Assembly (NCBI GenBank): GCA_964036045.1
Contig: OZ038378.1
Location: 146,196,001-146,260,000 of the forward strand
Length of the DNA: 64,000 nucleotides
Direction of reading: 5' to 3'
Source of the DNA: Eutreptiella sp. 'Long Island Sound 2002'
Taxonomy: Eukaryota; Protista; Euglenida
Below the pieces are notes generated by a model. That model was not told where the DNA came from, did no database searches, and saw nothing but the letters and a program-made list of their open reading frames with translations. Made by a program: the position numbers and the translations under genes. This document shows, piece by piece, positions 6,292-56,430 of the stretch. Position 1 is the stretch's first letter. Every line of letters starts with the position of its first letter.

Positions 6292-6404
<113 letters not shown>

Positions 6405-6776
6405 TGTCAACAAACAGGCGAGCACAACGCCAAGTCCGGATGCCAATTCCTTGTTAGCTGGTCATCAAACAAGACAAAGCATGTTCAACGCCAGTAGGCG
6501 CCTTTCTGCAGTACAGGGCGAGAGGAGGCACAGCCTGCGCTCGTTCATGAAGGTCTCCAGCCCTCGGCAGCTGCGCAGAGCGCTAAGCCAAGGGCCTGCA
6601 AAGGACAGACACAGATGTTAAGCTGGTTCAGTACTGGGCTGTGGGAATATTTCGGAGCCCTCACCTCCATGTCCCTGCACTACTTTCACCGCCCTCCGAG
6701 GTTTGTGGAATCGTCAGTTCAACAGGGGGAAGAAAGAGAGAAAGAATGAAGCCAGAAATGCACCATCATTGGTGCA

Positions 6777-6964
<188 letters not shown>

Positions 6965-7128
6965 CACCGGATGCTATCTGATCCCTCAAAGCACAAAGTT
7001 GCAGATCCACAGCAGTCAAAACAAAAAACTCATCAGTGACAAAGCCACATGCGGTGTTCAGTTCATTTCCAGACCCCAATACCTGTGGTCGACAGGGGGG
7101 TCTAGAGGGGGGGGGGGGTCAAATTTTT

Positions 7129-7131
<3 letters not shown>

Positions 7132-7178
<47 letters not shown>
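7132..7178. repeat. (GT)n microsatellite, opposite polarity to the preceding (AC)n tract
   Basis: Seen directly. Confidence 0.97.
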
Positions 7179-7771: not shown

Positions 7772-9804
7772 AATCACCTCGCAGAGGTTGTTAGATCAAA
7801 GCCAGGCAGGCGTATATAGGGGAAAATGCCACATACCCCCCCATTTTGGCCTTTTTGGGCCTATTCGCGTACCCTACCCCAAGGGGTTGAATTGTTAGTT
7901 TAACCCCTTGTAAAATCATTATTTTGTCCAATAAACGCATCCCCCAATGAGTTTTTGGTCCGGACCCCCCTAGACCCCCCCCACTTGAAACCCACTTTTT
8001 TCAGGTTTTCAAGGAGGGGGGGGGGGTGGGGGGGTGGGGGGGTGGGGGGGGGGGTCAAAAAATGACCCCCACTTTTTTTGGGTCGCAAATCATGAATCTT
8101 TTGGTTTTTTTTGATTTTGAGCCGAAAAAGTGTTTCCGGGTCCCGACTCCATAGGGTTTGTATGGGGCGGAGTGGGACGAGCGCTTATGCAGTTTATGCA
8201 CTTTTTCAGCCATTTTTGCTATGTTGGCGGTTTTGGCGACCTCGGTGACCCCGTGGTATCCACTTTGAGGGGTGTGAGTGGGGATGTTGTGACAGTATCT
8301 GCCTCCTAGTATACGGAAGGACGTTTTTTGCAGTCTCTAGCCTTGCTTAGGGCCGTTCACAACCCGTGCCAAAAACGCAAAATGGCTCTTTCCACCAATA
8401 ATGGCTTAGTGAATGGGCTGGTACGCAACCTGCTTATGCAGTTTTTTACCCTGGACAGCTCAAAAATCGAAGTTTCCGAAACTTACTTTTTTGACATCGT
8501 GATCACCTAAAATGACCATCCAAGCTATGGAAAGCATGTTTTAGGCCGTATTTACGTGTTTTTCGCCCGATTTGGGTATTAGGTCCGGGGGGGGGGGTCT
8601 TCCAAGGGATTGGTACACAACCTGCTTATGCACTTTTTCACTATGGGCAGCTCAAAAATCGAAGTTTTCGAAACTTGTTTTTTTGATGTTGTGACCACTT
8701 AAAATGACCATCCAAGGTATGCAAAGCATGTTTTAGGCCGTATTTGCGTGTTTTTCACCCTATTTGGGTGTTAGGTCCGGGGGGGGGGGTCTCCCAAGGG
8801 ACGGGTGCACAACCTGCTTATGCAGTTTTTCAACCCAGACAGCTCAAAAATCGAAGTTTTTGAAACTTGTTTTTGTGACATCGTGATCACCTAAAATGAC
8901 ATCTCAAGCTATGCAAAGCATATTTTAGGCCGTATTTACGTGTTTTTCACCCTATTTGGGTGTTGGGTCCGGGGGGGGGGGGTGTCTCCCAAGGGACGGG
9001 TGCACAACCTGCTTTATGCAGTTTTTCAACCCGGACAGCTCAAAAATCGAAGTTTTTGAAACTTGATTTTTTGATATTGTGACCACCTAAAATGACCATC
9101 CAAGCTATGGAAAGCATGTTTTAGGCCGTATTTACGTGTTTTTCACCCTTTTTGGGTATCAGGTCGGGGGGGGGGGGGGGGGCTCCCAAGGGACGGGTGC
9201 ACAACCTGCTTATGCAGTTTTTCACCCCGGACAGCTCAAAAATGGAAGTTTTCGAAACATATTTTTTTGATATTGTGACCACCCAAAATGACCATCCAAG
9301 CTATGTAAAGCATGTTTTAGGCCGTATTTACGTGTTTTTCACCCTATTTGGGTATCAGGTCGGGGGGGGGGGGGGGGGGGCTCCCAAGGGACGGGTGCAC
9401 AACCTGCTTATGCAGTTTTTCACCCCGGACAGCTCAAAAATGGAAGTTTTTTAAACTTGTTTTTGTGATATTGTGATCACCTAAAATGACCATCCAAGGT
9501 ATGTAAAGCATGTTTTAGGCCGTATTTACGTGCTTTTCACCCGATTTGGGTATTAGGTCCAAGGGGGGGGGGGGTCTCCCAAGGGATTGGTACACAACCT
9601 GCTGATGCAGTTTGTCACCCTGGGCAGCTCAAAAATCGAAGTTTTCGAAACTTGTTTTTTTGATACCGTGATCACCTAAAATGATCATCCAAGGTATGTA
9701 AAGCATGTTTTAGCCGGTATTTATGTAGTTTCCACCCTATTTTGGGTGTGTGTTGCTCGCGGTAGATTCTCTGCGAGGTGGACTTGCCGAAGGCAATAGA
9801 ATTT
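7772..9804 (+). mobile_element. Non-autonomous Helentron/Helitron2-like (HINE/DINE-1-type) element, copy 1
   Basis: 12-bp asymmetric inverted repeats: CACCTCGCAGAG at 7775-7786 and CTCTGCGAGGTG at 9769-9780. Hairpin TTGCC-GAA-GGCAA at 9784-9796, end ...TAGAATTT at 9804. Internal tandem array, no ORF. A near-identical inverted copy at 26412-28876 fixes the same boundaries. Confidence 0.75.
8426..9740 (+). repeat. Tandem array of about 7 units of ~195 bp inside element copy 1
   Basis: Marker CAGCTCAAAAAT recurs at about 8457, 8648, 8840, 9036, 9230, 9430 and 9625; each unit has a variable-length G run. Confidence 0.95.
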
Positions 9805-16942: not shown

Positions 16943-17229
16943 CAACCATTGCTGCTCAAAGCAGCTATCTATCTCTAGGCCATACAGGCGGCCTTAGCAG
17001 CTGGGCTTGGCTGTTGTGAGCAGCTGCTTGTTGCTGTTTCGGCAGCTGTTTGATGCTGCTCTGTGCAGCACGGCTTGGTTGCTCTGTGGAATGGCTTGTT
17101 GCTGCTGATGCTCCTACTGCTCCAAGCTGTCCATCTGGCCGGAGAAGGGGCTAACTTCAGCTGCCCAGAGCAGTAACAGTTGAGTGCGAACATCAGCTGC
17201 ATGCAGCAGCGACATCCATCTGCTCAAAG
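16943..17229 (+). repeat. CAG/CTG-rich dispersed repeat, copy 1 (copy 2 at 21891-22217)
   Basis: About 285 bp, near-identical to 21891-22217, which carries a ~40-bp extra segment. Confidence 0.9.
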
Positions 17230-17865
17230 CCGTGCGCGCGCTTGTGCTGCGCTGAAGCTGCGGCGCGTGACGTTGGGGGGTCTGGGTCCTGTGGTCCTCT
17301 GCCGGGCAATTTGGTGTGAAAGTCCGCATGTGCGGTGCTCTCCGTCTCGTGGAAATGATCTGGTGGCATCTCCGGTGGATAGCGTCAACCGATTGCCCAG
17401 TCGCTTCCGATGAGGCGGGCGAGCGCTGGATTGCCGGAACTTTGTGCCGCTGTGAGTGTCCCGCGCCCCACGTGCATGCCCCTGCCTTGCCCTGCACGGC
17501 GGGGCCGACAGACGTCATGGAAACCCTCTTGCCCGTGCACTGGCGTGGGCATTTTGTGTGCGCATTTTCCGTGTCCAAACCTCCGTGCCGCTGCCCCGGC
17601 GACGGAGGGGCGCGTGGGCCTCTGGGACCGAAACAATGAAGGTGGCAGCCGCAGCCCCGTTGGCGCGAGGGAATGCACAGGCGCTTTGCAGCGGCATCCC
17701 ACCGCGCGAAAGGGGCACCCGATGCCGCGGTGTGTACCTTGTGCCCCGTGGAGGCCCCCCGAAGGGGTGGTGGGCGTATTGGTAAGGGGACGCTGGAGGC
17801 TGGACATTGCCCGGCACGCCACCTCTGCCTCTGCTCCGATCCACTGCCATACCCGCCGTCTGCAG

Positions 17866-21890: not shown

Positions 21891-22217
21891 CAACCATTGC
21901 TGCTCAAAGCAGCAATCTGTCTCTGGGCCATACAGCCGGCCTTAGCTAGCATTGGTGCTTTGTGCAGCTGTGGGCTGCACCTTGCAGCTGGGCTTGGCTG
22001 TTGTGAGCAGCTGCTTGTTGCTGTTTCGGCAGCTGTTTGATGCTGCTCTGTGCAGCACGGCTTGGTTGCTCTGTGGAATGGCTTGTTGCTGCTGATGCTC
22101 CTACTGCTCCAAGCTGTCCATCTGACTGGAGAAGGGGCTAACTTCAGGTGCCCAGAGCAGTAACAGTTGAGTGCGAACATCAGCTGCATGCAGCAGCGAC
22201 ATCCATCTGCTGAAAGC
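21891..22217 (+). repeat. CAG/CTG-rich dispersed repeat, copy 2
   Basis: Direct repeat of 16943-17229. Confidence 0.9.
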
Positions 22218-26411: not shown

Positions 26412-28876
26412 AAATTCTATTGCCTTCGGCAAGTCCACCTCGCAGAGATTCTACCCCAAGCCACACACACCCTAAATAGGGTAAAAACTACATAAATACG
26501 GCCTAAAAAATGCTTTACATACCTTGGATGGTCATTTTAAGTGGTGACAATATCAAAAAAACAGGTTTTGAAAACTTCGATTTTTGAGCTGCCCAGGGTG
26601 AAAAACTACATAAGCAGGTTGTGTACCAATCCCTTGGGAGCCCCCCCCCCCCCCGTGCGGCCAAAACCCAAATAGGGTGAAAAACATGTAAATACGGCCT
26701 AAAACGTGCTTTACATACCTTGGATGGTCATTTTAAGTGGTGACAATATCAAAAAAACAAGTTTCGAAAACTTCCATTTTTGAGCTGTCCGGTTTGAAAA
26801 ACTGCATTAGCAGGTTGTGTACCAATCCCTTGGGAGACAGCCCCCCCCCCAGACCTAATACCCAAATAGGATGAAAAACACGCAAATACAGCCTAAAACA
26901 TGCTTTACATACCTTGGATGGTCATTTTAGGTGATCACAATATCATAAAAACCAGTTTTGAAAACTTCGATTTTTGAGCTGCCCAGGGTGAAAAAAAACT
27001 ACATAAGCAGGTTGTGTACCAATCCCTTGGGAGACACCCCCCCCCCCCCCCCCGGGACCTAATACCCAAATAGGGTGAAATATGCGTAAATACGGCCTAA
27101 AACATGCTTTACATACCTTGGATGGTCATTTTAGGTGATCACAATATCAAAAAAACCAGTTTTGAAAACTTCGATTTTTGAGCTGCCCAGGGTGAAAAAC
27201 TACATAAGCAGGTTGTGTACCAATCCCTTGGGAGCCCCCCCCCCCTCCCCCCCGGACCTAATACCCAAATAGGGTGAAAAACATGTAAATACGGCCTAAA
27301 ACATGCTTTACATACCGTGGATGGTCATTTTGGGTGGTCACAATATCAAAAAAACAAGTTTTGAAAACTTCGATTTTTGAGCTGCCCAGGGTGAAAAAAA
27401 AACTACATTAGCAGGTTGTGTACCAATCCCTTGGGAGACCCCCCCCCCCGGACCTAATACCCAAATAGGATGAAAAACACGCAAATACAGCCTAAAACAT
27501 GCTTTACATACCTTGGATGGTCATTTTGGGTGGTCACAACATCATAAAAACCAGTTTTGAAAACTTCGATTTTTGAGCTGCCCAGGGTGAAAAAAAACTA
27601 CATAAGCAGGTTGTGTACCAATCCCTTGGGAGACACCCCCCCCCCCCCCCCCCGGGACCTAATACCCAAATAGGGTGAAATATGCGTAAATACGGCCTGA
27701 AACATGCTTTACATACCTCGGATGGTCATTTTAGGTGATCACAATATCAAAAAAACCAGTTTTGAAACTTCGATTTTTGAGCTGCCCAGGGTGAAAAACT
27801 ACATAAGCAGGTTGTGTACCAATCCCTTGGGAGCCCCCCCTCCCCCCCGGACCTAATACCCAAATAGGGTGAAAAACATGTAAATACGGCCTAAAACATG
27901 CTTTACATACCGTGGATGGTCATTTTGGGTGGTCACAATATCAAAAAAACAAGTTTTGAAAACTTCGATTTTTGAGCTGCCCAGGGTGAAAAAAAACTAC
28001 ATTAGCAGGTTGTGTACCAATCCCTTGGGAGACCCCCCCCCCCCCCCGGACCTAATACCCAAATAGGATGAAAAACACGCAAATACAGCCTAAAACATGC
28101 TTTACATACCTTGGATGGTCATTTTGGGTGGTCACAACATCAAAAAAACAAGTTTCGAAAACTTCGATTTTTGAGCTGCCCGGGGTGAAAAACTGCACAA
28201 GCAGGTTATGTGCTGGCCCATTCACTAGGCCATTATTGGTGGAAACAGTCATTTCGCGTCTTTGGCATGGGTTGTGAACGGCCCTAGGCAAGGCTAGAGA
28301 CTGCAAAAAACGTCCTTCCGTATCCTAGTAGGCATATACTGTCACAACATCCCCACTCACACCCCTCCGAGTGGGTAGCACGGGGTCACCGAGGTTGCCA
28401 AAACCGCCAACATAGCAAAAATGGCTGAAAAGTGCATAAACTGCACCAGCGCTCGTCCCACTCTGCCCCATACAAACCCTATGGAGTCGGGACCCGGAAA
28501 CACTTTTTCGGCTCAAAATCAAAAAAAAAACCAAAAGATTCATGATTTTCGACCCAAAAAAAGGGGGGGTCATTTTTTTTGACATTTTTGACCCCCCCCC
28601 CCCCCACCCCCCCCACCCCCCCCCCCCCCCTCCCTGAAAACCTGAAAAAAGTGGGTTTCAAGTGGGGGGGGGTCTGGGGGGCTCCGGACCAAAAACTCAT
28701 TGGGGGATGCGTTTATTGGACAAAATAATGATTTTACAAGGGGTTAAACTAACAATTCAACCCCTTGGGGTAGGGTACGCGAATAGGCCCAAAAAGGCCA
28801 AAATGGGGGGGTATGTGGCGTTTTCCCCATATATACGCCTGCCTGGCTTTGATCTAACAACCTCTGCGAGGTGATT
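26412..28876 (-). mobile_element. Non-autonomous Helentron/Helitron2-like element, copy 2 (inverted relative to copy 1)
   Basis: Reverse complement of 7772-9804: AAATTCTATTGCCTTCGGCAA at 26412, 12-bp inverted repeats at 26436-26447 and 28862-28873, the same unique 5' segment with the G/C-run tract, and a longer internal array. Confidence 0.78.
26465..28205 (-). repeat. Tandem array of about 9 units of ~198 bp with 3-mer higher-order structure
   Basis: Marker TTTTTGAGCTG occurs 9 times. Diagnostic unit variants recur every ~598-600 bp. Confidence 0.92.
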
Positions 28877-30564: not shown

Positions 30565-30890
30565 CGCGCGCGGGGTCGGGAATCGGGGACGGGAATCGGT
30601 ACGGGCAGGGTCGGGGGCCGATGCGGGCGGGGTTGGGAATCGGCGCACGCGGCGTCGGGAATCGGCGTGCGCAGGGATGGAATTCTGTGCGCACAGGGTC
30701 GGGAATCGGTGTTGGTGATGTCGGGAATCGGCGTTCGCGGCGTCGGGAATGGGCGCACGCGGGGGCGGGACTCCGCGCGGCTGCGGGGACGGGAATCAGC
30801 GCGCGCGCCGTTGGGACCCGTCCCGCACGGGGGCGAGAATTGGCGCGCGCAAGGTTGGGACTCCGCGCGCGCGGGGTCGGGAATCGGTTA
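30565..30890 (+). repeat. GC-rich degenerate minisatellite, unit about 20-21 bp (GCGCGCGGGGTCGGGAATCG-like)
   Basis: Repeated GGGAATC(G)G cores interleaved with GCGC blocks; explains the overlapping Gly/Arg-rich ORFs at 29901-31251. Confidence 0.85.
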
Positions 30891-49013: not shown

Positions 49014-52000
49014 AGCATGGACCTCTTTCATCGACTGATTCTCTCCTTGGACAGCCTTGACACCGCTGGATTGCTGTGCCACCCACATGCCTGCCATGCC
49101 CTGGCTCCACCGTCCAATAATAGCCCTTGTCCTGTCACACCAGAGAGCCAAACGCCGCTTGCTGCCGGGATGCTAGGCCACGGGTTCCACCCCCACCAGC
49201 GAATTCCTCCCCTGTGGTGACACCTCCATCCTCATTCGGTCCTTTGCAAATAGAGTGAGTTGGTTTTTTTCCGTTGGTAGCCCCCCCCCCCCCCCTTCCC
49301 CGTACAGGCAGACCTGTCGGTTTGGGTTTTTATATTTCCTATTTTTAAGCCAGGGCGAGTTTCAGGCTTCCACTGCGCAGACGGCGCCCTAGGACACCAA
49401 CGAAGGCCGGCACCGACCAGACACTGGCGGGCGAAGATTCCAAAGCTGGCACTTCATCCCTTTCCCTGCTACTCTTGCCTGGCAGTCCCGGTTGCTGCAT
49501 CTGGGTGCGCCCCCCCCCGCAGCCCACCACCAATTTTCCTCTCCTCCTTGTGTGGTGTTTCTTGCGAGACATCTTTGGCCCATCTCTGCACGTCCTGTGC
49601 CCCTCGTTGACTGTGACCCCCCGGGGACATTTGGAGAGGGCGATCACACATGTGGGGCCCCTTGTATTTATGCCTTTTCCACTTGCACCTGACCATGACC
49701 CCAGTGTGCTGAACCTTGACCACGGGTATCCTTTGTAAATGGGCTAACCCACCCCCATTGGGACTGCATCATTGGACTCATGGACTGGTATCCCCCCCCC
49801 AAAAAAAAGAGAGAGACGAAAGATGGTACCTTTTGCTGTTTTGGAGGGATAGAGATGATGTGATGTGGATCTGCCCGGGTGGCACCATGTCATGAAGAGT
49901 AAGGTGCAGGCGGTCGTTAAAACCATGCGCAAGGTACCAAGAAAATACATTTTGGTGGTGCTCATCCACGCAAGCCCAGACAACAAGTCCTAATTGTGTG
50001 CCATGCACCACTTGTGCGCACTTTCATCCAATCCAATGCACCCGTTCAATCATCCTTGGGCTGGTCTGAGAAGCTGCGCAATGCTGGGCCTTGAGTAGTT
50101 CAACACAGCCCAGGATATGGACCACAGCAATGTTCAGAATGCAGTGATCGGGCCTCTGCCTTTGGAGGTCCAAGCAAAGAACAGAAGGTTGAACATCTTT
50201 TTGCAAACTGCCCTGTACATGCAGACAAATCATATCTTTGCACATCACATCCTTACGTTACACACCCTCACTGAGGACATGCAGCTCATTCAAACCATCC
50301 AATGCAAGAGAGCCATCCCTGCCATTCCATTGCCACCCGTCCAAGGATGAGAGCAGCCATCAGCTGGTCCCCGCTGTTCGGGCTGAGTTCCCTCCCGGAC
50401 AGGCTTTACAACACATTGCAGCACAAGCACACACGACACAAAAGCGACAACTCAAATTCTATTGCCTCTAGCAAGGCACCTCAAAGAGAGTGCTAGCACA
50501 CTAGAGTCAGTCAATTAGGCCAACAGTTAGCCAATCACTCAGTCAGTCAGTCAGTCAGGCAGGCAGGCATGTAGGCAGAAACACCCAGTTTGGCTTTTTT
50601 GGTGGCGGCGTGCATCTACAAGCGATGGTGAACCTCATGTGTGCAGGCAAAGTCAGTGGTTGAGTGGAAAACCAGTTCGCAGATGGCCGAACGTAGGCTC
50701 AAATCCTGTACTTGATAGCCGACCGTGTGATGGGGTGTCCTTCCGCTGTTTTGCGGACCAGGGCTTGAATCCCACTGAGCACAAACTTTAGAACCCACCC
50801 CCCATCCACCCCCCCCCCCACACCCCCAAATACGGGGTGCCAGAGACTTCAAAATCGAAAATTTCATTGGGGGATCATTTTGTCTCGCAAAACAATGATT
50901 TCACAAGGGGTTAGACATCCAATGTCATGCCTTGGGGTATGCTACGCGAACAACCGCCCCAAAAAGGGGGGTGCATGGCGTCCATGCCCGCGCGTGATCC
51001 AACGACCCCTCTTCGAGGTGATTTTCTCAGTGTGCCGTTGTCCTGTTTGGAACCAGGGTGCACGACGGTGCACACACAAAAGCAAGATCTCGGATTGCCT
51101 TGGGGGCCCATAACGCGCAACAATGCTCTTCGGGTTTTATATCGCACGCCCCCGCCCGGCCAAGAATGGTGGGGTTGACGGACTTTCGCTTCAAAAGGGG
51201 GGGGGGGGGTCACAGGAGCCCCCTGACTGGACACCCCCACCCCCCGAAAGGGCTCCCGTGACGGGACCCCCCAAAGCAACCCAGGAACATCCCAGGTTTC
51301 CATGGATGTGGGCGGGGGGGGGGGTTACTACAAGGCAGAAAGGGGGACGGGGGGGGGGGGGGTTGGCAGGGGATTGGAAGGGGAGGGGGGCACTTACTTG
51401 CAGTGAGAGTACATGCAGGTCAAACCCTAAATCAAGACTGAATATTGGGACTGAGCTGGTGGGGAAGGGAACATCGGCTACAGGGCTGCATCAGGATGCA
51501 TATTTAGGGACACAAGAACGATTCCCGCCAAGTGCCCCTTCCGGCGCCCTTGGTGCCAATGGAAATCATGGTCTCTGTCACGGGAGCCCTTTTCCAAGCC
51601 CCCCCCCCCCCTTTTTAGCCCCCCTGCCCCCCCCCCCAAGCGAAATCCGCCACCGCATGCAGCACTCATCCACCCCCCCCCCCTTCCGGCCCCCCACAGG
51701 CTGTACTGCAGGAAGACCTCATGAAGCTCTGCCTGAATCCCTTGGGACGCATGGCCTGGTGCTTGAAATATGCACAAACCAACAGCTCAGTCAAAGTGCC
51801 CTGCGGATCCCTTGAAGAGGTCAGGGAGGCTCTGTGTTGAACAGACTAAAGGGAGCAGATGGTGTGCTGCCTGCACGAAGGAGGCCACTGTGCCCCCCCT
51901 CCCCCCCTGCCGCCCCCATAATTTGGAAACCATGCCTCACGTGTCAGCTCGGTTTTGTGCGTTCCATTTCTCAATGGCTGGCCCCGGTACTGAGGCAATA

Positions 52001-53695: not shown

Positions 53696-54884
53696 CTGCA
53701 ATCGGAGACCACTGGATGAGTCGAGGGTGCAGGAAGGTGCTGCTGTGAGGGTAAGGCCAAGACAGACATTGATTTTCGCCTGTGGCTAAGGTCTGCAGTG
53801 CACGACTTCTTTAGAGAGAGGGATGACAGTTTTGTTGTTTTGCTGCGCTTTGTTCTTGTTAGACCGGCAGTGCTGGATCAAGGAGTCATCATCATCATCA
53901 AGGAAAGGCAGGTATTGTCCAGCCCCTCCCCCACTCACCCATCCGTTCTGCTCTGCCGATGTACAGCTGAGGCCTGAACTAGCAGTCTTTCGCAAGAACA
54001 GAACCTCAGGACTCTTTGAACACCGGGCCAGACGCAAATACCAGGATGACGGCAGTGGTTGTAGAGGGGAGGAGGGTGTGGGAAGGGGGGAGGGTGGGGA
54101 GGGGAGGGGTGTGTGCGCAAGGGGGGATTCAGAGGGGTGCTACGTGGGTTTTTTGCTTTCGTTCTGGCACCCCATGAGTGTCATGGGTGTCAAGTGTGTG
54201 CAGGGGCGTAGAAAAACTGTATTAAGGAGGGAAACTAGCACAGGTCAGGGTCAGGCATGCATCACAGGCTCTCCTCTTTTCACAGTTGGGCCCCCAGTAG
54301 ATCAGGATCCCTGCACCTGTCCCCTCAGTGTTGCCACGAAGTGCTTGTGTTGTGTTGTGCTGCCACCAAGCCTGTGCCGGCCACAAATGATGGACACGTG
54401 CAGTGGGCCATGGAGCCACTGACTTCCAGGACACACACGGGTGGCCAAACAGTGAAGACCAGGATGACTGCCAGTGCAGAGCCCCAGCCAACATAGCCCA
54501 GTCAGCAAGAGAGCAGTGCCAGATGTGGACACAGAGTGGATGCCAAAGCTGAGAACACAACACAAGCACTTGGTGGCAACACAACACAATACAAGGGCAA
54601 CAAAATAGCTTCAACACTGTTGCCCCACCCTTTGCCTTCCCCTACTCCACTCCAATACCCTCTCGCTCTCTCACACACATCACGTCCTTCTCACATCTCC
54701 CCACATTACTTCCTGCCACACACCCTACTCCCTTTTCCAGTGTGCTGCACACACATACATTGTCTATGGGCCTGGTGAGAAAAGCCGTTTTCAGGCCGTT
54801 ATGGGTTGGCTGAGTGACCTCCGACCACCCCTAGTGACAGTAGGGCTTCCCAGGGAATGAAGCTTTCAGCCTCAACAATTCAAA

Positions 54885-55135
54885 ACACCAAATTTCCAAA
54901 ACTGATTTTTTTCGATATTATGACCACCCGCAATGATCAAATATCCCATGCAAAGCATCTTTTGGACCCTGATTGTGTGTATTCTGGTCCACTTGGCCTT
55001 TGGGTGCCAGGGTGGGGTCCTTTCCAAGGAATGGGTGTACGTATGCCTTGCCCATGCAGGTTTCAGCCTCCTCGGATCAAAAATCAAACTTTCCAAAACC
55101 ACCTTTTTCGACATTGTGACCACCCATAATAATCA
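54885..55135 (+). repeat. Diverged monomers of the ~195-bp element repeat (also about 57950-58075 in reverse, and a diverged 5' segment at about 50880-50980)
   Basis: AAAA..AAATTTCCAAAACTGATTTTTTTCGATATTATGACCACCCGCAATGATC..ATATCCCATGCAAAGCATC resembles AAAAATCGAAGTTTTCGAAACTTGTTTTTTTGATATTGTGACCACCTAAAATGACCATCCAAGCTATGTAAAGCATG. Confidence 0.6.
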
Positions 55136-56430
55136 AAGATCACATGGTGTGATTTGCCACAGCCACTAGATTGTGAACCGGGCAATCCAACTGTTTGCTA
55201 GTGCTGCGCAACCACCTCTAGGGGCACCACAGGAGCAGTAATCAATCCCTCTTCGAGATGCCTTGCTGAAGGCATTAGAGTTTGATGAGAAATAAATACT
55301 GCTGAATGGGAGTGTTGCTTTGCACACTAGTGTGACGCAAAGCATGACTCAAAACGTGACTGCTCACTGAGCACTGCTGTCAAGGGAGCCATGATTGGTG
55401 GAGTAGCAGCAAAATTGGCATAACGAAACAAAAAACCGAACCACCCCCTTTGCTGGCACAGTGCACCCTGCTTTTGGCATGCACGGGGCCATGCCAAAAG
55501 CATCTTGGATCTTGGAAACTGGGAGCTAGCCCCCAGGACCCCCGTCATTGGTTAGAGGGTCCATATAGAAGAAAAGTGGAATGGGACCTGGGTCCAAATT
55601 GACGCACAGTGGCGGCTATAGGCCAACCAATTTTTGCCCACTACAGTGCAAACAGGCCCAAAACAAGCTTTCGGGGGCAATAAGCACCACTAGGAGGGCC
55701 TAGTTTGTGCTACATGGATCCCCATGGGTTTATACGTACTCCCATTGTCACCAAATGATCACCCAACAACAGCCCGAGGGTCCCCAGGGGTTGTTGGAAG
55801 TCACCCAGAAATTGCAACTCTTCAGCCCACCCATAACCGCCTGAAAACGGCCAAGTACCCCGCCCCCGTACCCCGCTCCCTAGTTACACTGGTTGACTAT
55901 CAAGTGCACTGGTTGACCATGAAGCACTGCCAAGTTACTCATGCGGTGTTGAATGTGTCACATACCCCTCAAATTTTAGGTGCCTTGAGGAAATCTGGTT
56001 TTTTCCCTGAGGAAAAGTTTCTAATGTGGGTGGGTGGTTGGGTTGGCAGGGGGCATGTTGCTCTTTTCTCAGGGGCTGGCAAGCAATCCGCAGCAAGCAA
56101 CGGAGGTGTTGAAGGCAAACATGGCGCAACCAATAGGAGTGGCAAGGCAACCAATTGATAGGGTAGTTAGTCTACAAGGGTGGTCAAAAAGCAACAAAAT
56201 TGTGTGTGCTCACACACCACCCTGGTTCTTTGAGATCACTGGAAATGCAGTGTAACAGCAGTACGCTGAGAAAAATGGGATGTAGGTGGTGGTCATGACC
56301 CTGCGAAAGGATTGCTGGTGAGAGAGAGAGGTGTACCAGTAGTGTCCCAGTGTTCTGTTCATTGTTCAAAGGGAGGGGATGCACCCAGCAGCACCAGCGA
56401 CACGCACATCAGATGAAGTCAGGATGGAAC

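Follow-up and report, generated by a model that had tools for sequence, protein, structure and literature searches.

Rolling-circle transposons of the Helitron2 (HLE2) group and the non-autonomous HINEs are defined by inverted repeats of 12-16 nt, a stem-loop following the right-hand repeat, the absence of a target-site duplication and the presence of central tandem repeats (PMC4067079, PMC11417382). The domain DUF6570 is the marker which separates HLE2 from the canonical Helitrons (HLE1), and UCH is also HLE2-associated (PMC11417382). Elements of this kind are already known from flies and oysters. Here we describe a satellite-carrying element present in two copies in a 64,000-nucleotide stretch of the genome of the euglenid Eutreptiella sp. 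'Long Island Sound 2002' (contig OZ038378.1, positions 146,196,001 to 146,260,000; hereafter the window). We consider it, with a probability of about 90%, to be a non-autonomous (HINE-type) member of a Helitron2/HLE2 rolling-circle family that would be moved in trans by a master element encoding a Rep-helicase (RepHel) protein.

Two window copies and a genome-wide family

The two copies resemble each other from ...AATCACCTCGCAGAGG to ...GGCAATAGAATTT, with divergence starting directly outside these points (Table 1; a slash marks a junction throughout). The original prediction, made from the letters of the window alone, had described 12-bp inverted repeats, a TTGCC-GAA-GGCAA hairpin, about seven internal repeats of 195 bp, no target-site duplication and a second copy with the same boundaries and nine units. 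All of this stands: neither window copy is flanked by a duplication, in agreement with the comparison of filled and empty sites given below. The limits that it proposed, 7772-9804, enclosed the genuine shared ends but were 2-3 nt too wide on each side, the extra bases (AA on the left, TT(T) on the right) being target. Similarly, the Ts of its T-rich terminus are present, but as the 3' half of an AAA/TTT target rather than as part of the element.

Each unit of the arrays contains one poly-G run and a CGAA-GTT-TTCG mini-palindrome. The separate G-run tract within the leader, for which G-quadruplex potential had been suggested, is indeed kept in both copies and fits a G-quadruplex motif; it also forms the 3' arm of a C-run/G-run hairpin spanning approximately 7963-8036. 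That fold is not significantly better than those of shuffled sequence (z = -1.8), and Rfam yields only sub-threshold, miRNA-like matches for it. A tblastn comparison of the RepHel open reading frames with the element found no coding remnant. With up to 2 mismatches allowed, the window has 5 matches to the 14-mer end motif where 0.36 would be expected, and in the genome the ends are found by the thousand while reversed-pattern controls give none; the element is therefore not a chance assembly.

Table 1. Coordinates of the window copies, of related elements in the window and of the autonomous partners
Feature	Position	Strand	Remarks
Copy 1, non-autonomous element	7774-9801	+	2,028 bp; TCACC...CAATAGAA; 7775-9802 if the cut is T/T; bounds from copy 2 and about 100 genomic ends
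Copy 1 flanks			left ...GGAGTAAA/, right /TTTACCAAC; without duplication
5' inverted repeat CACCTCGCAGAG	7775-7786	+	exact complement of 9769-9780; within small palindrome ACCTC-GCA-GAGGT
5' unique leader, ~650 nt (653)	7774-8425	+	85-99% identity among sampled genomic copies (blastn), 89-92% with autonomous partner
G-run tract (G-runs split by single T)	8016-8054	+	kept in copy 2 (28592-28634) and partner (L077:1532-1575)
Tandem array	8426-9747	+	6.8 units of 192 bp, 89% identity (Tandem Repeats Finder; repeat families D3/D4)
3' subterminal inverted repeat CTCTGCGAGGTG	9769-9780	+	21 nt from terminus; part of 3' 34-mer
3' stem-loop TTGCC-GAA-GGCAA	9784-9796	+	followed by terminal TAGAA at 9797-9801; hairpin 5 nt from terminus
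Copy 2	26415-28874	-	2,460 bp; inverted; ~90% identical to copy 1; both boundaries in common
Copy 2 array	26469-28211	-	8.8 units of 196 bp (Tandem Repeats Finder)
Copy 2 end features	5' repeat 28862-28873; 3' repeat 26436-26447; hairpin 26420-26432	-	
Copy 2 flanks			...ACACCCAGAA/ and /TTTCCCTAAT; without duplication
Sister-family short element	50457-51021	-	565 bp, no satellite, own G-run; GAGAAAA/TCACCTCGAAGAGG ... CTCTTTGAGGTGCCTTGCTAGAGGCAATAGAA/TTTGAG; 3' end CTCTTTGAGGTG-CCTTGCTAGAGGCAATAGAA/TTTGAG
Decayed relative	54860-55283	+	two degenerate ~190-bp monomers (family D4), then related 3' end CTCTTCGAGATG-CCTTGCTGAAGGCATTAGAG/TTT (CTCTTCGAGATG...GGCATTAGAG/TTT)
Autonomous partner, copy C1	140,266,100-140,286,099 (L077+L076); element 140.267-140.285 Mb		described 5' to 3' in the text
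Autonomous partner, copy C7	76.777-76.794 Mb		starts head-to-tail after three passenger units

Family size was assessed through exact pattern counts on the 2.28-Gb assembly, for which the reversed-pattern controls were zero. A search with the ends, as had been proposed, reveals thousands of copies in which both the inverted repeats and the termini are conserved. The 3' 34-mer occurs 3,408 times (control 0). Of the 5' 24-mer there are 3,982 occurrences following AA, 338 with a base other than A at position -1 and 46 with a base other than A at -2, giving approximately 4,400 5' ends in total. In at least 40 copies the first 129 nt match copy 1 without a single difference. The 42 elements having both ends exact in the first 97 Mb of chromosome 1 range from 0.6 to 5.8 kb (median 1.8 kb; 40 of them shorter than 3 kb), their lengths stepped by about 195 bp, so that the array copy number per locus is in bulk about 1-12 monomers. 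Altogether the family occupies about 8 Mb, or about 0.35% of the genome, a share relevant to repeat annotation.

Sequences flanking the ends define the target. In the 45 left flanks that are not tandem, the three positions before TCACC are A in 45, 45 and 30 cases, respectively, and in 41 right flanks the bases following AGAA are T in 41, 39 and 36 cases. The target is thus the palindrome (A)AA/TT(T). When the flanks of the filled site GCTCAAAAATGGAAA/TTTCTGAAACTG are joined they match an empty site for which a related repeat offers many examples, and insertion is therefore precise and without duplication. Because the T that opens the element can be exchanged for the first T of the flank, two readings of the cut fit equally well: either TCACC...AGAA entered between A (or G) and T, or CACC...AGAAT entered between T and T. 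The T/T insertion that was to be looked for in the flanks is accordingly compatible with the data, and A/T within AAA/TTT is equally so; the expected lack of duplication was confirmed.

Nearly all (about 300) of the 338 left junctions lacking A read GCTCAAAAAT, then C or G, then GAAG/TCACC, corresponding to the native satellite ...CGAAG/TTTTCGAAAC, and the right-hand counterpart AGAA/TTTTCGAAAC is also present. At L081 the 3' side of such a G-type insertion is another head-to-tail unit. These junctions in native satellite mean that the flanking AA belongs to the target, not the element, and exclude an AAT duplication. They therefore bear on the proposal that this is a cut-and-paste miniature inverted-repeat transposable element, with terminal inverted repeats and a 3-bp AAT target duplication (AAT-CACC...CAATAG-AAT). 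Such an element would account for the 12-nt inverted repeat, for the AAT found on both sides of CACC...CAATAG in most copies and for the empty site GGAAATTTCC with its single AAT. It is nevertheless exceedingly improbable, given the roughly 300 ...CGAAG/TCACC junctions without AAT, a right repeat that lies 21 nt inside the end with a hairpin after it, a coding partner that is a RepHel rather than a DDE transposase, and the strongly biased orientation of junctions between elements (983:2:0, detailed below).

The same G-type junctions rule out an assignment of AA to the element (AATCACC...CAATAG). That idea had arisen from left ends which adjoin partial upstream units (CAGC-AA, CACCC-AA, AAGG-AA and CGGT-AA before /TCACC) and lack a native AA. 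Inspection of all those sites shows that the native break is always xA/TT(T), one change from the canonical target. Probably, elements inserted into mutated copies at the partial-unit junctions, and the composites were then mobilised again, beginning at the outer 5' end and stopping at the first 3' end.

An autonomous partner with the same ends

An autonomous Rep/helicase element with the same ends, which the original prediction had suggested looking for, is present in the genome. It was found through Pfam DUF6570, which gave 262 candidate matches, one of them lying between family ends on chromosome 1. None of the best 150 Helitron_like_N matches is adjacent to a listed family end, the partner being absent from these because its scores on that Pfam model are too low. 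The partner measures about 18-19 kb and, judged by its Rep domain, is present in about 28 copies, 94-100% identical, of which at least 7 have open frames of 3,065-3,498 amino acids.

In the C1 copy the 5' end TCACCTCGCAGAGG is succeeded by a 653-nt leader, 89% identical to that in the window and including the G-run, and then by 193-bp monomers. There follow 72 units of a 25-bp repeat, a UCH open reading frame, a 2,668-residue open reading frame with DUF6570, Helitron_like_N and PIF1, and a 3' untranslated region of 1.1 kb leading to CTCTGCGAGGTG-GACATGCCGAGAGCAATAGAA/TTTT, the same succession of repeat, hairpin and CAATAGAA terminus as in the window copies. The flanks of this copy are the two halves of one satellite monomer, so that it is itself a clean insertion. 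The 25-bp repeat, TTGGATCTCCGTTGTGTGAACCAGC (L077:4045-5848, equivalent to C1:140270144-140271947), lies between the 193-bp satellite and the UCH open reading frame and is conserved in the C7 copy.

The C7 copy is collinear with that on C1, at 90-98% identity over the compared stretches (all but C7:76,784,800-76,791,499), and within those stretches no terminator motif precedes the shared 3' terminus. It carries a single open frame of 3,451 residues, with UCH at the start (74 bits) and a DnaJ domain, complete with HPD motif, at the end (32.9 bits). A third partner copy has its 5' end at the matching distance. The Pfam families seen in the partner are UCH, DUF6570 (51 bits), Helitron_like_N, PIF1, AAA domains and DnaJ, and the full protein, of up to about 3,450-3,500 residues, thus combines UCH, DUF6570, Rep, PIF1 helicase and J-domain. 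The Rep domain bears the HUH motif LHIHW. No endonuclease domain was detected by Pfam, in the C-terminal 1,068 residues even at E <= 1, although a very divergent domain could escape such a search. The partner is, by its domain content, of Helitron2 type and not a Helentron in the strict sense. Hence the Helentron/Helitron2-type ends originally proposed are borne out as regards HLE2/HINE architecture and a DUF6570-bearing RepHel partner, but not as regards a strict Helentron. A non-coding variant of 4.3 kb, with 13 exact copies, keeps the 3' untranslated region of the partner and is another deletion derivative.

Two further RepHel families were considered as partner and rejected. In family B (about 1,924 residues, 12-15-kb tandem spacing) the 10 kb between open reading frames (L074) lacks any end motif. 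Family C (2,535 residues; Rep, PIF1 and SAP) has upstream tandem repeats of its own, and its inverted repeat, next to (TA)n, is a different one of 14 nt. At L073+L075 (C6:28327800-28343799) this family shows Helitron_like_N, PIF1 and SAP with no DUF6570 match; the tandem repeats, about 160 bp long, lie upstream of the open reading frame, and two copies of the 14-nt CTACACCCCTCTCC, inverted relative to each other and separated by about 15.1 kb, each adjoin (TA)n. L033 and L041 contain non-coding sequences related to its leader.

The window element would accordingly be a passenger retaining the 5' end, leader and ~193-bp array of the master plus the last ~60 nt of its 3' end, with all coding sequence deleted, and the large protein of the master (UCH, DUF6570, Rep HUH nuclease, PIF1 helicase and J-domain) would move it in trans. 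Each enzymatic step we infer by analogy with Helraiser. Rep would nick one strand at the left boundary, and the helicase would peel that strand away towards the 3' end, where the 12-nt right repeat and the hairpin would mark the stop and the strand would be cut after ...CAATAGAA(T). The single strand, probably circularised, would then enter (A)AA/TT(T) sites without duplication, and missed or extra terminators would result in head-to-tail multimers and chimeric units. The recent activity originally proposed is plausible in view of the identical 129-nt 5' ends, the close similarity of the partner copies in Rep and the long open frames that several of them retain.

Several points weigh against this interpretation. 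All of the evidence is the sequence of one assembly, and the assignment of the RepHel to HLE2 depends on the DUF6570 marker together with UCH. The left cut is ambiguous between A/T and T/T. The catalytic tyrosines of the partner Rep domain were looked for and not located. In both partner copies examined, moreover, the hairpin of the coding-adjacent 3' end is weakened (ATGCC...), and this weakened end is followed by a few monomers and then by a second, canonical 3' end, so that either of the two may be the functional right end of the master.

Oriented junctions and the origin of the satellite

Junctions between elements are overwhelmingly of one orientation. The head-to-tail junction GGCAATAGAA/TCACCTCGCAGAGG occurs 983 times genome-wide, with tail-to-tail junctions at 2 sites and head-to-head junctions at none. 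Head-to-tail arrays extend to 7-9 units, for example at C1:198.09-198.11 Mb. At C24:10313403-10327165 at least 9 family 3' ends are spaced at about 1.03 kb, whole short elements being arranged head-to-tail in the manner of a higher-order satellite. At L017/L018 (C3:129643154-129647912) the tandem unit is repeated and takes 12 nt of 3' flank with it; the satellite arrays of the copies there are broken up by runs of N, which may be assembly gaps. In the 983:2:0 orientation and in the units with read-through, transposition that runs one way and depends on a terminator has left a clear genomic footprint.

The arrays might instead have been built by one insertion after another, each in the same direction and at the edge of a copy already in place, rather than as rolling-circle concatemers or through terminator read-through, with AA/T sites recreated at the edges of each new insertion. 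Every insertion does leave AAA/TCACC on its left and AGAA/TTT on its right, both near the preferred target; near-adjacent insertions are seen 6 and 12 nt 3' of a 3' end (L060 and L017, respectively); and unit lengths vary within a single head-to-tail array. However, AGAA/TTT reads as AAA/TTCT on the other strand, and random orientation would predict many tail-to-tail junctions where 2 are seen against 983 head-to-tail, while the L017/L018 unit with its 12 nt of flank is as read-through would give. We regard such re-insertion as possible, if on balance unlikely.

The original prediction also held that the family disperses a satellite and likened it to elements that seed satellites, such as DINE-1. 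Seeding of this kind is only partly borne out. In a related variant of the repeat, units are arrayed over at least 18 kb (C1:154.845-154.864 Mb). For the 193-bp variant, the dispersed elements suffice to explain the monomers. A 24-mer specific to the monomer has 10,388 exact occurrences and is unaltered in about 44% of sampled monomers, which puts the genome total at about 23,600, an average of about 5.4 for each element. This equals the sampled content per element, and free-standing arrays of the 193-bp variant are therefore not needed.

These figures bear on whether the 193-bp repeat was a pre-existing host satellite, into which the family landed or which it captured, such that the satellite-bearing master is a chimera produced by nesting. 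The family often inserts into the 193-bp repeat and the related repeat, both examined partner copies lie within or beside such repeats with a second 3' end after each, and the long array of the related variant would suit a host satellite. Nonetheless, over the compared stretches the partners on two chromosomes are collinear from 5' end to RepHel, with leader, satellite, 25-bp array and UCH in the same order and no terminator in between, and the third copy has its 5' end at the matching distance. Together with a monomer total that dispenses with free arrays, this makes a host origin improbable. With the array being part of the 5' region of the master itself, the passengers inherit it rather than acquire it.

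A more speculative suggestion, which we put forward tentatively and think rather doubtful, is that the 193-bp monomer is a working module of the transposon and not passive cargo, its copies serving as landing pads or as iteron-like binding sites for RepHel. The centre of the monomer mini-palindrome is a near-cognate cut or target site (CGAAG/TTTTCG here, GGAAA/TTTCC in the sister variant). About 7% of all 5' junctions fall at exactly one monomer position. Of the sampled non-tandem junctions, about 20% occupy the site homologous to it in the sister repeat, and at least 5 different flank variants are represented among these. Were the monomers such a module, the arrays may steer insertions into their own repeats, leading to self-nesting, chimeric units and array growth.

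Other features of the window and comparison with known systems

The window includes two further relatives of the family, a short sister-family element and a decayed copy (Table 1); no 5' end was found for the latter. Immediately upstream of copy 1, positions 6293-7178 contain the dinucleotide tracts (CA)55, (AC)92 and (GT)23. Two direct repeats of 234 bp (16997-17230 and 21984-22217), 98% identical and 4,987 bp apart, enclose a GC-rich interior (62-65%) and look like a pair of long terminal repeats, with the open reading frames inside the pair giving no Pfam match. A 22-bp tandem array at 30586-30888 (13.7 copies, 65% matches) lies in a GC-rich stretch and overlaps two open reading frames of about 340 residues without Pfam match. 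More generally, none of the window open reading frames longer than 250 residues matches Pfam. In the genome, a 24-nt query which we take to be the Euglena gracilis spliced-leader sequence gives 7,483 matches with up to 2 mismatches (control 0), dispersed on both strands. We regard these matches as evidence for a genome of Euglena type, though not as proof of the species. Their number is far above that expected for spliced-leader RNA genes alone, and they may be retroposed spliced transcripts or repeats derived from the spliced leader.

Canonical Helitrons (HLE1) have termini of 5' TC and 3' CTRR. The element resembles them, under one reading of its cut, in its 5' TC and its insertion between A and T. 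Like them, it lacks a target-site duplication and ends a few nt after a 3' hairpin. It differs in its 3' end, ...ATAGAA instead of CTRR, in having inverted repeats and in a partner with the HLE2 marker domain. The HLE2 elements of HELIANO (PMC11417382) are closer: each end has a short inverted repeat, the right-hand repeat is followed by a stem-loop, and the DUF6570 and UCH of the partner are both HLE2-associated. The T/T rule for that group and insertion between A and T are equally compatible with the present data. The RepHel here is fused to an N-terminal UCH and a C-terminal J-domain. A text search of that survey for 'Euglen' gave 0 matches, and our literature search found no paper describing Helitrons in Euglena; the present family places active-looking Helitron2-type elements in a euglenid.

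The HINEs, including DINE-1 (Thomas, Vadnagara and Pritham 2014, PMC4067079), have subterminal inverted repeats of 12-15 nt at a distance of 2-4 nt from the 5' end, a short palindrome close to the 3' end, tandem repeats at the centre, a T-rich target that is not duplicated and a partner sharing their ends, all as seen here. The likeness to DINE-1, also drawn in the original prediction, is one of architecture. As in the mite and Culex HINEs, the inverted repeat is partly palindromic; the right repeat lies 21 nt from the end compared with 38-60 nt in the mite elements (PMC4067079). Further differences from the HINEs are the palindromic (A)AA/TT(T) target, the partner without a detected endonuclease domain and the euglenid host.

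The nearest parallel for the satellite is Cg_HINE of Crassostrea gigas with its Cg170-type repeats (PMC7492417). There too, short dispersed arrays lie between HINE-type flanks, with no target-site duplication and an oligo-T target, the monomers being 140-180 bp and averaging 4-5 per element as compared with monomers of about 193 bp in Eutreptiella. Head-to-tail junctions set the two systems apart, a quarter of all ends being found in them here. So does the partner: no autonomous element could be linked to the oyster HINEs (PMC7492417), whereas here one has been identified which carries the same array in its 5' region. The result is a fully linked pair, master and satellite-carrying passenger, for a transposon class thought to spread satellite-like repeats.

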